DNA of 64,000 nt from Basidiobolus meristosporus CBS 931.73 (GCA_002104905.1 MCFE01000083.1:1-64000); one strand, 5' to 3'; positions 23,451 through 29,466 are shown, counted from the stretch's first letter. Program-made: numbers and translations. The notes: generated from the sequence alone by a model not told the origin.

Positions 23451-24043
23451 ATGGTACGTGAACATGACCCAGATTCGACATCGATCCGAGTCGCGGATCC
23501 ATCCATCCCGCGTCCTGGATGCTTGCTTCGAAACGCCCCTCGATGTGTTCCCCCTACCGTGACCATACTAACCCCCTTCTTTCCAACCAGTCTAAGAAAG
23601 CCGGAAAAGTTCAGAAACCTCAAGAAGCCATCTCCCTCGGTCCTCAGGTCCGTGAGGGTGAGCTCGTCTTCGGCGTCGCCCACATCTTCGCTTCCTTCAA
23701 CGACACCTTCGTCCACGTTACCGATTTGACCGGTCGCGAAACCATGGTCCGTGTCACCGGTGGTATGAAGGTCAAGGCTGATCGTGATGAGTCCTCTCCT
23801 TACGCCGCCATGTTGGCTGCCCAAGATGTTGCCGTTCGCTGCAAGGAATTGGGTATCACCGCCCTCCACATCAAGATTCGTGCTACCGGTGGTAACGGTC
23901 CCAAGACCCCTGGTCCCGGTGCTCAATCCGCTCTCCGTGCTTTGGCCAGAGCTGGTATGAGAATCGGCCGTATCGAAGACGTTACCCCCATTCCTACCGA
24001 TAGTACTCGCAGAAAGGGTGGTCGTCGTGGTCGCCGTTTGTAA
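23451..24043 (+). CDS. RPS14: 40S ribosomal protein uS11 (S14); ATG exon + intron 23454-23590
   Basis: [21 protein letters not shown]...[25 protein letters not shown]...[14 protein letters not shown]. Confidence 0.98.
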
Positions 24044-24419
24044 ATCTTTTCATTTGCACATTCACGCCTTGTGTGTTGCAATTCGAATAAATCGTCTATT
24101 CAACCTCTCAACCTGAGTCCACCTTTCAGCCCAATCCAATTCAACCCAACCCACTGCGCTTGCATTTGAGTCGATCCCGTGAAGACACCCCGTTCCCCGT
24201 CAACATAAGCATTGGCATTGGCATTGGCTCGATGTAATGATTTATTTCTACATTCCAAAACTTTTCATTAACATTAACAAATGTTATACATATACATATA
24301 CATATACATCGGTGAGAACTCGGGTGAGAAAGAAAGGAACAACCTATGTATAACTGAAAGAGTTGCAAGAAAAAAAGGGGTTCGCAACTGGTGGCCTCTA
24401 ATGAAATGTCCTGAAGATC

Positions 24420-27400
24420 TTATTTCTTCAGGATGCTGGATATACTAAAGCTCGACTTGATCGCGTCCAACGATCCGTTGGATTTCATTTGTCCTAGCTT
24501 GCGGGGTAGATTGAGTCCAGGCTTCCGGCCGTTGCCGGGTAAGGGTGGTGGGAGCCCGGGCAAACCGTTTGGCTTAGACCTATTAACATTGAGCAGTGAG
24601 CCTGGTCCAATATTCCCGCTGGGTGCGATGGAGTATCTGGAACGTGAGGCATCACTACCGTTCGATGGCTGAGCTGGTAATTCCGAGCCGCTTTCCGTAG
24701 ACACGTTCAATCCGATGGATTGTCTGTTCTTGCCAAGTGCGATCTTTCTCTTTTTTTTGGAGGCGGGATCGGCTGGTGTTTCTTGTAGCGCTGGCCGAAC
24801 TTTCGGTGGGCAGTGTTTGTCTCTTTCGGTTGAAAGAGATCTTCTTTTTCAAATTCAGCTGTGGTGGCTGCGAGGTTTCTGATGAGACAAGTTCTGTGAT
24901 TTGTTCCAAAGAGGGCTCCTCAGCAGCGGGTTTCTTCTTGCGTATCAGGGGTTTCTTGATGCTGATGGTTTTCTTCACAGGCTTATCCTCAGCGTCACTG
25001 AGTGGTGGAAGCTCCTCTGGAAGTGTTTCCGGTTCATCCATGTCAACCTCTGGGATGTCGACAACAACTGGAAGCTCAATATTTGCCTTGTTCGCCTTCT
25101 TTTTGGTTTGTTTGGGCGAGGGTAGGGAAGCAGCGGGAGAGGATTTCGCGACTTCCTTCTTGGTAGATTTGCTCAATTCCGGAGAATCCTTCATCTTTGC
25201 TGAGGCACCCGAGTTCTTGGTAACTCGTTTGTTACCCTTCTTGGGTGGTTGTTCCTCAGGCTCGGACTCGCTTGAATCTTCAACCACGATATTCTTGGGG
25301 ATGACGGAAGCTCTTACTTGCTTGCGAGTCTGCTTGGGGCGTACAGCATTAGTGATTTTTTCGTCAGAGCTTCCTCCAGATTCAGGCGCTTCGATGATAT
25401 CATCATCTACAGCCTTGGCCGCACCACGGTTGTTTGCTCGCTTTTGCTTAGCAAGTGTAGTTTGGCCTGCCGATTTCTCTTGAATTGTCTTTTCCAAAGA
25501 CTTGATCTGCATTTCAAACTGACGACGCTCATCGTTCCAATCTGCTGACTTTTCCTGTAACTTCAGCTGCGTGTCTGTGGCCAAATCCATAGCTTTCACC
25601 AACTTGTCTTTCATTTTCTGGAACCTCTCCTCCACTTTACTGCTACCCTGTTGGGCAGCAATGTGGAACTCTTCATTGGTTTTAGCCATCGCCTCAGCAT
25701 TATCATACTTCAGTCCTAGCTCCTTGATCTGATGAAGCAAATCCTTCCTCTCAGATGTCCAGCGCTCTTCTTTAAGACGATGCTCGGCCACAATGAGGTC
25801 GCTCTTGGCCTTTGCTGCACCCAGTTCTCTCTACGAAATATGGATTAATTTCAGCAACACTAGTGATAAAGTGAAAAGAAGACTTACGTTGACGGCTTCG
25901 ATTCGATTGGTCATTTCGTTTCTTTGTTTCTCGAATGAATTCTGCTCCGACTTCATCTCAGCACGCAACTTCTTAATGGTTTGTTCAAGGTCGGTGATCT
26001 TCTGGACGAACCCTTCGGATTCCTGGCTATCGCTATTCTTCTCGAGAAGCCATTTCTTACGTTCCTTCTCAATTTTGACGGACTCCTTTTCTAAGAGCGC
26101 CTCAAGATTGGCGTTCTCCTTTTCAAGGCTCTTCATTTTGAGAGACTGATTCTCGACCTTCTTTCTCTCATCCTCTAGTTTTTCTTCTAGCTCGACCTTC
26201 TCCTTTTGGAGTTTTTGTGCTCTCTTGGTTTCCGAAGTAAGTTTTTCCAGAATCTGGCTATGGGTATCTTTCAAATCGTCATAAGTGGCGCGAAGGGTCT
26301 TAAGGATCTCTTCGGTAGACACTTCCTTCAATTCTAGCGCCTTGAGAGATCTCTGGGACTCTTCGTGATCCATTGACACCTCGTCGTACTCATTCTAATG
26401 ATCAATTTTGGTGAGAATTAGCCTTACATGAGTTACATCGCTTTCTACTCACCTGGAGTAATGTCAGCTGCAGTTCAAAATCAGAGCATTTCACCATCAA
26501 TGAATCACGTTCATCAGTAACAAGGGCTAGTCGAATATCGTTAATCATCCATTCGCACATTAGCCGAAAATTACTATTGCTTACACAAATTGACCCGAAC
26601 TCTACGGATTTCTTCCTTTAGCGTGACAAGTTCGGTGGACATCATGGTCGAGTTCAATTTGGCATCCATGATCAGCATGTTTTCATTGGCTTGCAGCTAA
26701 GGAGAGCAAGAAATTAATAAAACTCTTTGAACATCCTCCTGCGACATCAACTGCATTCGCGTCCTTTACCTCAGCGTATTGTTCCTCAAGCTCTGAGCAA
26801 TTTTGTGCCAACTCCTGTATCTGCTCCTCAAGAGATTCATTTTTGCCTTGCGACTCTTGGAGTAAAGTCTCCTGTTGACGCAACAATCCGAATTGGGCCT
26901 CGTATTCAACCTAAAGTAATATCTATGAGTGACTCATACTAACAAATCTTGGCACGATCCCCATGAAAGCATACCTGAATCTTTTTAAGCTCGGCCTTAT
27001 ATTGTTTTGCTCTTCTTTCAAGCTGAGTCACTCTGCGGTCGATCTTGTTGGGTTTCTATACGAAGAGAACTCAAGATGAGTATCGAAGCACAAGTAAAAG
27101 ACCGGAGTATTGGTGGGCGAAATATTACCTCACGTAATTTCATTTTTCTTAGAACCTCTGCGAATTCCAAAAGCTCGATAGTGTCACGACTGAGCTGCTT
27201 CTCGTTTGCCTGACGAAAGGATGAGTAAAAGTGATAATAATAACATTGAACAAGGATATCTACCTCTACGTTAAAGACAAACAAACTCTTGCAATTTCCG
27301 GAATAGAAATCTACGGAGCGGATGAAAGGGTTGGTCAATTGGAAAAAGTGGAGGATTTTCAATGTTGAGATTCAAACCTGAGGTAAGCAAAGTGAAATAC

Positions 27401-28790
27401 GTGTCATCGTATGGCAAAGGACCGACGAATGATCCGGATGTCAACTGAGTGGTGAATTTTCCTAAGATATTTTGTCAATGCCAGTTATTTACAAGTAGAT
27501 GAAACGGAGGCTTTCATACTCATCAAGTAGAATGATTTGGATACTCCGCTAATGGCAGAGCTGATTGGAGTTTCCTTGGTCATGATCGAGTCTAATGGGA
27601 TATAGCGAGGGACTCCCATATCAATCTGTACAGTGGTTTTAGTAAACACAGCCACAGAACGCCGATATAAAGAATGAGGACAACTAACCAGATAAAAGGT
27701 ACCAGAGGTTGGATCAACGCCGGAAGTTTCAAATCGGATGGCAAGTACAAACGGCAGTGTGCAGCCTTCACGTAGCAGTGAGTCATCTCGCCTCTACCCC
27801 CACATGGATGGATATAACAATGTTACCTTGATCAAGTTTTTCTTGTATCTCGTCAAAAGATTCAATCTTGGTGAGAAATGGATCGACGCCATGGTTCAAA
27901 AGATCAGCTGTGTGTATATGGTTCAGATAAGTCCACGTTCAACAGAGCATACTAGAGATGATAAATTTACCGGTGACTGAGCGCTCGGTTTGTAAGTCTA
28001 CGCATTTGCTGTCGGTGACCCCCAGATAGCTAAAAATCAATCGCTTTAGTTATATCTATGATGACGCGAGAAAAGCAACAGCTGCTTACGCGTAGGAGAT
28101 GGACATATTCTTGTGATCTTTGAGATCCTGTCTCTTTAAAGTTTCCATGAAAGGGGCCAGCACTTTCATTCTAGAGGTTTTCGAATAATGTCAGCCTCAT
28201 TTTCATCACTACGCAAAGAAATGAATCCAAGGTACCTATCATAAGTGGTGTTTTTACCCATTCTGATAACACGAAACAGCCATCAGTAAAAGCGGTGAGA
28301 ACATGAAGACCTGCAAAATACTGACCCAATACCCATGTTGAACACTATGGAATCGCCACCTGAAAAGTTTCCAAGTTAGTAGAACGCCGATTGGGTAGTG
28401 CTCAAGGTATACCTACCATTGATCGAGAATTGAATGTTCTCCTCTATTCTGCTATCACTAAAGGCTTCGAGCTTTTGGGAGTTATAACAGCGATCGAAAT
28501 ACAGTCTCCGTCTAAGCAAACAGTAAGCAAATAAAGTCCAGTGACACATACCAACAAAGGGGACTTACGTTTCAGGGGGGCCAAACGCGCCTTCTGTTTG
28601 GATGAAGAGGTTTAGTATGAGGCTAACAGATACTGTCACAAAGCTTCGCTGAACCTTTCTCGAGAGTCAAAACTAGATATTTGTTATTTTCGCTGCAGGC
28701 GAGTACATCCCCGACCTTTGCAGGCTCGGTGGGTGTGGAATTGGGATGTAGTTGCACCAGTACATTGACATTGCCAATTATACAGGCCAT
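24420..28790 (-). CDS. Divergent kinesin-like protein: N-terminal degenerate (pseudo-)motor domain in 13 micro-exons, long coiled coil, Lys/Pro-rich tail
   Basis: Exons 28790-28655, 28593-28569, 28511-28417, 28359-28326, 28262-28236, 28170-28090, 28029-27971, 27907-27827, 27765-27689, 27625-27520, 27461-27378, 27310-27264 and 27209-27129. All introns are GT-AG, 54-67 nt and phase-compatible, giving 933 nt with no stop. Kinesin landmarks appear in order: NVNVLVQLHP, LYFDRCY, FNMGIGMGKNT, SISYAYL...VDL, GTFYLIDMGVPR, PLPYDDTYFTLL, SGNCKSLFV, DTIELLEFAEV. The coiled-coil ORFs 25831-26379 and 24655-25791 follow. Confidence 0.82.
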
Positions 28791-29194
28791 TTTGGAGTCC
28801 GTGGTGAGGGAAGAAACGAAGATAGGGATGGTGTTTCTGTTGCTTTCAAAATAAGCTATTCTTGATATTGAAAGTTTAAACGCTGAGGTGACTTCGAGTT
28901 TATTGTTTTTTGTTTACAGTATGAAAGTATCGAATTAAATTCCATTTGAAGGATTCAACAACTAGAGGGGGCATTTTATTTGTTTATTGGCAGCGTCCAA
29001 TCAAATTCACACCCTTGTCCTATTCGCAAGCCTCAGCATTTATTCAACTTCGTTGAAGCTGCGCATCCTGGGTTAGGGGAGCCTCAAATCAACATTGGTT
29101 GATTGTTCTGAAAAGGATCATAAAACTTTTAATACATCTGTGCTCATAACACGACCTTTTCTCTTACCGCCACGGTTGGTTTCACGATAGCAGA

Positions 29195-29466
29195 ATGGTA
29201 GAGTTCTTCAAAGTGGCGTATATGGAATAGGTTGAATACGTTACTCACGTGTCGCTGTTATATAGGAAAAGCAAGCCCCTGTCAAGCACGCAAAAGTAAT
29301 CAAGGTTCTTGGCCGTACAGGCTCCCGTGGTGGAGTCACTCAGGTGCGCGTTGAATTCATGGATGACACCTCTCGCTCCATCATTCGCAACGTCAAGGGC
29401 CCAGTTCGTGAGAACGATATCCTAGTGCTGATGGAATCCGAGCGTGAAGCCAGACGCCTTCGCTAG
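29195..29466 (+). CDS. RPS28: 40S ribosomal protein eS28 (S28); ATG exon + intron 29198-29265
   Basis: [67 protein letters not shown]. Confidence 0.97.

Follow-up and report, generated by a model that had tools for sequence, protein, structure and literature searches.

Which parts of the kinesin motor fold can still serve a protein when the motor chemistry is gone? Dead relatives of motors can reveal this, and few of them are known (Vik1/Cik1, KIF26, KIF7/Costal2, and Smy1). The question is raised by a minus-strand gene at 28790-24420 in a 64,000-nt stretch of the genome of the early-diverging fungus Basidiobolus meristosporus CBS 931.73 (GCA_002104905.1, MCFE01000083.1:1-64000; below called the window). 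A first-pass annotation, made from the sequence alone, had suggested that 13 micro-exons of this gene encode an N-terminal kinesin motor-homology domain in which the nucleotide-binding motifs are degenerate. The analysis presented here leads to much the same view: with a probability of about 0.8, this is a functional and expressed gene whose product carries a kinesin-derived head that very probably is non-catalytic, and the protein may be called a pseudo-kinesin.

The gene model was rebuilt from the raw sequence. The 13 micro-exons between 28790 and 27129 (Table 1) join in frame to an open stretch of 933 nt (311 codons) that is not interrupted by a stop codon. All 12 introns between them are 54-67 nt long, follow the GT..AG rule, and contain branch-point-like CTAAC or CTGAC motifs. 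The exons, intron sizes, open frame and peptide described in the first-pass annotation are thereby all reproduced. In the same frame there is a stop codon upstream, and no ATG comes between it and the one at 28790. Six more exons (14-19) encode a coiled coil and a basic tail, giving a gene of 19 exons.

Transcript evidence comes from four sequencing runs whose contigs were compared to positions 24400-29000. One of these, the public run X3, is labelled 'DNA?', and was recognised as complementary DNA (cDNA) by its intron-less contigs. It contains 0.29 of the sampled words of the locus, which is near the 0.33 expected for exons only. The X3 contigs skip exactly the modelled introns, with at least 15 joints listed, all of them CT..AC on the plus strand, while the contigs of the genomic run X1, which probably represents the source sample of the assembly, display no joints. 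Record 9 of X3 is 1508 nt long, which equals the sum of the modelled exons from 28733 to 26171, and the depth in the bin 28712-28865 (19.7/137.9 x 154 = 22 nt) independently places the end of this contig at 28733. The agreement between length and depth confirms all 17 junctions in this interval and links the exons of the N-terminal domain to those of the coiled coil in one spliced contig, a linkage that the first-pass annotation had set as a test of its own proposal. Record 9 reaches record 6, which extends to 24400, through a two-allele bubble at 26077-26200. The two variants of the bubble differ at four positions (e.g., 26107, 26149, and 26170) and have comparable depth in X1 and X3; since both are found in genomic DNA as well as in cDNA they are two alleles or haplotypes, each of them transcribed. 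The first 57 nt of the coding sequence lie outside the X3 contig and are backed instead by the B. ranarum proteins, which start with identical residues. Alternative splicing that restores the motifs was considered and rejected, as the sole assembled transcript uses the degenerate exons.

When single-exon translations were compared to Pfam no match was found, as these pieces are only 25-45 residues long. The homology searches were hence performed using database proteins that cover the spliced domain. These were a public model of 332 residues (P0003), which was reached by a two-row alignment of the exon translations of the gene, and orthologues from B. ranarum that were found from there. Kinesin (PF00225) is the sole Pfam match for residues 1-225 of P0003, at 20 bits and an E-value of 3.8e-4, which is under the cutoff. 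For the B. ranarum orthologues P0004 and P0005 the same family scores 30.2 bits (E-value 3e-7) against a cutoff of 29.3, so that the Pfam check proposed by the first-pass annotation comes out in favour of a kinesin. Phmmer searches of PDB gave 31 matches, 30 of which are kinesins, and a profile made from the three Basidiobolus sequences gave 17 matches, all kinesins, the best being Plasmodium kinesin-8B (7z2a_K, E-value 6e-5). The profile alignment is collinear: the first third of the motor, as far as the P-loop, corresponds to residues 6-122, and the part from L12 to alpha6 to residues 253-307. Among the 100 nearest neighbours found using a protein language model, 84 are kinesin clusters.

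A hidden Markov model (HMM) was also built from 42 eukaryotic kinesin motors that were retrieved by a P-loop DNA pattern and a profile; the retrieval pattern skewed the metagenomic kinesins obtained toward the KECIRAL-type (kinesin-13-like). The spliced B. meristosporus domain scores 22.0 bits with this model and the B. ranarum proteins about 31, while 2000 shuffled sequences reach at most 8.4. Giant-virus (GVMAG) contigs, at L004:3442-4545 (Pfam Kinesin 200 bits) and about 25 further IMG/VR loci (e.g., L018, L020, and L064), were found to encode intact kinesin motor domains with a KECIR-type alpha4 motif; they serve solely as reference kinesins here. An HMM made from the giant-virus kinesins performed weakly. 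Taken on the Pfam, PDB and HMM scores, residues 1-311 share homology with the motor domain of kinesins, as originally claimed.

The fold was predicted using AlphaFold2 (AF2). With only the three Basidiobolus sequences the prediction failed, giving a predicted local distance difference test score (pLDDT) of 30.7, while an alignment of 60 rows that included 57 real kinesins gave a pLDDT of 76.7 and a predicted template modelling score (pTM) of 0.81. When the latter model was compared to PDB using Foldseek, the top 50 matches were all kinesin motors, with template modelling (TM) scores of 0.63-0.74 and E-values of about 1e-16, and the search against AFDB clusters gave ordinary kinesins only, at 12-18% identity. 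The retained kinesin fold claimed from the sequence is thus what the prediction returns, from an alignment that contained kinesins. A non-kinesin fold was considered and rejected.

The motifs that handle the nucleotide in kinesins are in a poor state. Only 13 of the 44 columns in the 60-row alignment that are conserved at 85% or more in real kinesins are retained. The P-loop (N1, GQTGSGK[ST]) reads G-(gap)-[VI]-G-M-G-K-[HN]; the position of the Gln is deleted and the Mg-binding Ser/Thr is replaced. All columns of switch I (N2, NxxSSRSH) are gaps, as the alignment shows a 15-residue gap after residue ~180-184. Switch II (N3, DLAGSE) is DMGVPR in both species, with the Asp kept and the Gly and Glu lost. 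The adenine-contacting RxRP motif (N4) is QLHP in B. meristosporus and QLHH in B. ranarum. The decay listed in the first-pass annotation (QLHP, a short P-loop, no switch I, DMGVPR, and PLPYDDTYFT) is as described, and B. ranarum has undergone the degeneration too. The switch I gap is found at, or at most four residues from, the junction between exons 8 and 9, and the deletion may have arisen when a micro-exon was lost. Intron 8 (27826-27766, 61 nt) contains no remnant resembling switch I.

Hydrolysis in kinesins and myosins requires switch I as well as the Gly and Glu of switch II. Because these are gone, we strongly infer that the head would be unable to hydrolyse ATP in the manner of a kinesin. 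It could still be argued that the protein remains active as an ATPase or motor by way of non-canonical motifs, as the P-loop glycines and Lys and the switch II Asp are kept, and as the domain is under strong purifying selection (see below). With switch I absent, and with the switch II Gly and Glu, the P-loop Ser/Thr, and RxRP replaced in both species, this is very improbable.

B. ranarum has two proteins with a complete N-terminal domain, P0004 and P0005, which are 96% identical to one another. They are encoded on separate short contigs. Allelism, homeology, or a recent duplication may account for the pair, and each of the two models is cut short by a contig end or by reading into an intron. 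On the B. ranarum contig L205, all of the 14 exons that were compared have the same length as in B. meristosporus and identical AG/GT flanks. Exons diverge by 19% between the two species and introns by 58%. For the 311 codons of the N-terminal domain the proportions of nonsynonymous (pN) and synonymous (pS) differences are 0.055 and 0.654, and the ratio of the corresponding rates (dN/dS) is approximately 0.037, a rough figure as dS is near saturation. In this domain 273 of 311 residues (88%) are identical between the species; the stalk reaches 66% identity and the tail 46%. The N-terminal domain is thus the most constrained part of the protein.

It is therefore difficult to regard the N-terminal region as a decaying relic or an annotation artefact, with coiled coil and tail as the only functional product. 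The public annotation does omit residues 1-93 and split the gene, and its 332-residue model has no Pfam match on record. However, a spliced transcript contig joins the N-terminal domain to the coiled-coil exons, the domain is better conserved than any other part, and B. ranarum has the same splice sites and exons of the same length, making such a relic hardly credible. Transcription, conserved exons, and a dN/dS of about 0.04 together argue that the N-terminal domain is not pseudogenic; the reading as a pseudogene was rejected on these grounds, in line with the functional gene proposed initially.

The conservation is not evenly distributed within the domain. In the counterpart of switch II-L11-alpha4-L12-alpha5 (residues 207-275) 4 of 69 positions vary between the three sequences, while 42 of 256 vary in the rest of residues 1-325 (Fisher p = 0.03). 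The beta4-L8 segment is 93% invariant, and the vestigial P-loop segment, at 76%, is among the least conserved. This pattern would fit a head that has been retained for its binding surface and not for its pocket.

The domain is followed after alpha6 by KPNKID, a neck like that of N-kinesins, and then by a long, highly charged region of about 450 residues that is consistent with a coiled-coil stalk, as there is no proline between residues 315 and 760. This bears out the KPNK and long coiled coil noted earlier, and the junctions concerned are present in the X3 contig. The last 325 residues form a basic tail with a calculated isoelectric point (pI) of ~9.9, rich in Pro, Ser and Thr, with a KKKRK cluster and conserved islands at the C-terminus. 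Based on this architecture we tentatively propose, at slightly less than even odds, that the protein is a static microtubule binder. The stalk would dimerise the protein. The dimer would probably act on microtubules of the nucleus or the spindle, which it would bind or cross-link, or for which it would be a scaffold, in a static manner that needs no turnover of nucleotide. Since conservation is highest in the counterpart of the microtubule-binding face of kinesins (switch II-L11-alpha4-L12-alpha5) and among the lowest in the vestigial P-loop, that face is the suggested contact, and the basic tail could provide a second attachment site.

Several observations weigh against the picture of a non-catalytic microtubule-binding head. 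The retained P-loop glycines and Lys and the switch II Asp make nucleotide binding possible. The Arg of PYRDSKLT in L12/alpha5 is an Asp here and the N-terminal domain is acidic with a pI of 5.05, so canonical microtubule binding may be weakened or lost. A usable AF2 confidence required real kinesins in the alignment, which makes the fold evidence partly circular; the sequence statistics that indicate homology to kinesins are independent of this circularity. Hhalign comparisons with the giant-virus kinesins were uninformative. The argument from the pattern of conservation is built on just three sequences, and nuclear localisation is inferred from the basic cluster alone, which is a putative nuclear localisation signal (NLS).

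The changed charges could also mean that the head has been freed from microtubules and reused as a protein-protein interaction module, as in Smy1p, or as a signalling platform like Costal2/KIF7. In L12/alpha5 the positive residues are lost (R to D and K to Y) and the head is acidic. Smy1p, which is related to kinesins and has no requirement for microtubules, sets a precedent (PMC2141741). Such a scaffold is nevertheless considered unlikely. The switch II-alpha4-L12-alpha5 region is the most conserved part of the domain, the Lys and Ser of the alpha4 motif INKSL persist as VSKSF, and the basic tail has the character of tails that give auxiliary binding to microtubules or nucleic acids.

When the C-terminal exon was compared to 1.84 billion cluster representatives, only the public 344-residue fragment of the gene itself and one B. 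ranarum fragment were found. Word-based searches with the domain and with the three-sequence profile, covering candidates of 179-581 residues, gave no relatives beyond the three Basidiobolus proteins. On these searches, the family has been found only in Basidiobolus. A literature search revealed no paper linking Basidiobolus to a protein of this kind.

In addition to the contigs that represent the gene itself, longer contigs match short pieces of exons 9, 10, and 12 (27726-27755, 27597-27622, and 27261-27312) with ~82-96% identity and at ~40% of the main depth. They are record 5 of X1 (10.5 kb), record 13 of X5 (15.8 kb), and record 11 of X4. In organism C the matched piece spans the degenerate switch II codons. 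The partial matches suggest that each genome has another pseudo-kinesin locus, which has diverged from the first.

Static microtubule binding is not the only use to which a dead head could be put. The stalk might instead form a pair with that of an N-terminal kinesin that is catalytic, in the way of Vik1 and Cik1 with Kar3. The dead head would in that case contribute a second, nucleotide-independent microtubule contact by which processivity or targeting is tuned. A dead head combined with a long coiled coil follows the logic of Vik1/Cik1 (PMC4338441; PMC3384419). The counterpart of the microtubule face, which is better conserved than the rest of the domain, also agrees with such a role. The top PDB sequence matches are enriched in kinesin-8 (7z2a-c, 7rs5, 7tqx, 7tr1, and 7lff), and fission yeast kinesin-8 acts as a heterodimer. 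However, no partner kinesin turned up, although no search aimed at partners was made. The other related locus, seen in contigs of the reads, seems to share the degenerate switch II codons and would thus be another pseudo-kinesin, and the heads of Vik1 and Cik1 are C-terminal. The identity of 66% between the stalks of the two species is neutral on this question. A partner head is accordingly regarded as a doubtful alternative. A more specific version is that Basidiobolus has a small lineage-specific family of N-terminal pseudo-kinesins, one member of which uses its stalk to pair with an N-terminal kinesin that is active, perhaps a kinesin-8, and works in the nuclear spindle, which is unusually large in this fungus. 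This is a long shot. If true, it would be the first N-type counterpart of Kar3-Vik1/Cik1, with one live and one dead head on a common stalk.

The 3' end of the gene required a correction. Compared to the contigs of all four runs, including genomic X1 and cDNA X3, both the window and the public assembly contain one extra base at 24787/24788. This base shifts the frame of the final 98 codons and leads to a premature stop at 24655. When it is removed the protein has 1085 residues with a stop at 24420, and P0002 of B. ranarum can be aligned, one block after another, to the 100 C-terminal residues that are gained. Since none of the four runs has the base and the repaired frame matches P0002, the 1-nt insertion at ~24788 is an assembly error in the window and in the public assembly. 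The gene end at 24420 given by the first-pass annotation is therefore correct once the base is removed, but not for the window as read, where the frame stops at 24655.

In the public annotation the gene is split into two "hypothetical proteins" of 332 and 344 residues, neither of which has a Pfam match on record. The first of these, K493DRAFT_103556 (P0003), spans 28336-26574 (L001:5354-7116). It starts at an internal Met (28336) within the vestigial P-loop and ends by intron read-through after exon 16, with a stop at 26574. The second (P0001) spans 25689-24655 (L001:8001-9035) and ends in the false frame. Residues 1-93 and ~423-663, the latter comprising about 240 internal residues in the middle of the coiled coil, have no public annotation. 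The two filed proteins are thus one gene, to which 93 N-terminal and ~240 internal residues can be restored, and the C-terminus put back in frame. The gene is flanked by RPS14 (Pfam Ribosomal_S11) at 23519-24043 (+) and by RPS28 (Ribosomal_S28e) at ~29250-29466 (+). The RPS14 neighbourhood, downstream of the gene, is kept beside the C-terminal fragment of B. ranarum (L002).

Table 1. Exons and short motifs of the Basidiobolus pseudo-kinesin gene, in window coordinates.
Feature	Position	Strand	Remarks
Exon 1	28655..28790	-	136 nt, residues 1-45, start codon 28790; N-terminus shared by the B. ranarum proteins
N4 motif vestige QLHP (for RxRP)	~28754-28743, in exon 1	-	
Exon 2	28569..28593	-	25 nt; length arithmetic of X3 record 9; equal length and AG/GT flanks in B. 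ranarum
Exon 3	28417..28511	-	95 nt; model, X3 contigs, B. ranarum exon match
Exon 4	28326..28359	-	34 nt; first half of vestigial P-loop; joint 28262/28326 in X3
Exon 5	28236..28262	-	27 nt; second half of vestigial P-loop, MGKNT; X3 joints 28170/28236 and 28262/28326
Exon 6	28090..28170	-	81 nt; model, X3 contigs, B. ranarum exon match
Exon 7	27971..28029	-	59 nt; beta4-like segment
Exon 8	27827..27907	-	81 nt; alpha3-like helix, last residue Gly180
Exon 9	27689..27765	-	77 nt; beta6/beta7-like
Exon 10	27520..27625	-	106 nt; vestigial switch II DMGVPR at 27622-27605, then L11-/alpha4-like segment
Exon 11	27378..27461	-	84 nt; L12/alpha5-like segment PLPYDDTYFT
Exon 12	27264..27310	-	47 nt; SGNCKS, beta8-like
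Exon 13	27129..27209	-	81 nt; alpha6-like helix; end of motor-homology domain (311 codons)
Exon 14	26975..27055	-	81 nt; neck-linker-like KPNKID, start of coiled coil
Exon 15	26770..26910	-	141 nt; coiled coil
Exon 16	26585..26696	-	112 nt; coiled coil
Exon 17	26453..26526	-	74 nt; coiled coil; without public annotation
Exon 18	25888..26394	-	507 nt; coiled coil; without public annotation; holds the 4-SNP (single-nucleotide polymorphism) two-allele stretch 26077-26200
Exon 19	24420..25830	-	coiled coil to ~25399, then basic Pro/Ser/Thr-rich tail; stop codon 24422-24420 after removal of the extra base
KKKRK basic cluster	24744..24758	-	NLS-like, inside a block conserved with B. ranarum

A close analogy in kind is provided by Vik1 and Cik1, the budding-yeast partners of the kinesin-14 Kar3, which have a kinesin-fold domain without a nucleotide site attached to a coiled coil and are non-catalytic (PMC4338441; PMC3384419). 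The Basidiobolus protein resembles them in that the nucleotide site is lost, a coiled coil is attached, and the non-catalytic head is under selection. However, the domain of Vik1 and Cik1 is C-terminal and follows the coiled coil, while that of the Basidiobolus protein constitutes residues 1-311 and precedes the stalk and a neck similar to that of N-kinesins, a contrast already drawn by the first-pass annotation. No sequence relationship between the two beyond the superfamily was seen.

Three groups of proteins with an N-terminal head are also relevant. KIF26A and KIF26B (kinesin-11) are long proteins that serve as regulators or scaffolds and whose kinesin-like domain, at the N-terminus, has no motor activity (PMC10585591). 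The position of a non-motor domain at the N-terminus of a long protein is shared with Basidiobolus, but KIF26A and KIF26B are animal proteins, and the loss of switch I and a stalk and tail found only in Basidiobolus are specific to the latter. A KIF26-type link was seen for one distant cluster, at rank 74 of the 100 protein-language-model neighbours (Atlas). The best PDB sequence matches, both by phmmer and by the profile, come from kinesin-8 and kinesin-14 motors, with no KIF7 or KIF26 among them. KIF7/Costal2 are non-motile scaffolds in which a kinesin-like head at the N-terminus is combined with a coiled coil (PMC12919046). This layout is also that of the Basidiobolus protein, but no specific similarity was found. 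KIF7 differs in having kept a recognisable nucleotide site; it binds microtubule tips in cilia, and Basidiobolus is not known to have a Hedgehog pathway. In S. cerevisiae, Smy1p has a divergent N-terminal kinesin-related head and a coiled coil and can function without motor activity (PMC2141741). It is fungal and has the same order of head and coiled coil; the stalk and tail of the Basidiobolus protein differ in having relatives found in Basidiobolus only. Smy1p works with Myo2 and actin cables.

The active N-terminal motors that come closest are the kinesin-8s (Kip3, CaKip3, and Plasmodium kinesin-8B). Like the Basidiobolus domain they are N-terminal and have a GNCK motif before beta8, and they give the best PDB profile matches. 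Kinesin-8s are, however, active plus-end motors and depolymerases with an intact P-loop, switch I, and switch II, and the affinity, read from PDB ranks only and at no more than 25 bits, would be a weak one.

The Basidiobolus protein has the architecture of the non-motile N-terminal kinesins, a head followed by a coiled coil, with a loss of motor chemistry predicted from the motifs. Non-catalytic kinesin-like proteins were already known, and the protein will be of interest to specialists on kinesins and the fungal cytoskeleton while leaving the field unchanged. What is new compared to the known systems is an N-terminal head from which switch I has been removed outright, found in an early-diverging fungus. 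Such a head, lacking switch I and still transcribed and conserved, constitutes a natural test of the kinesin head as a pure N-terminal binding module of a dimer.

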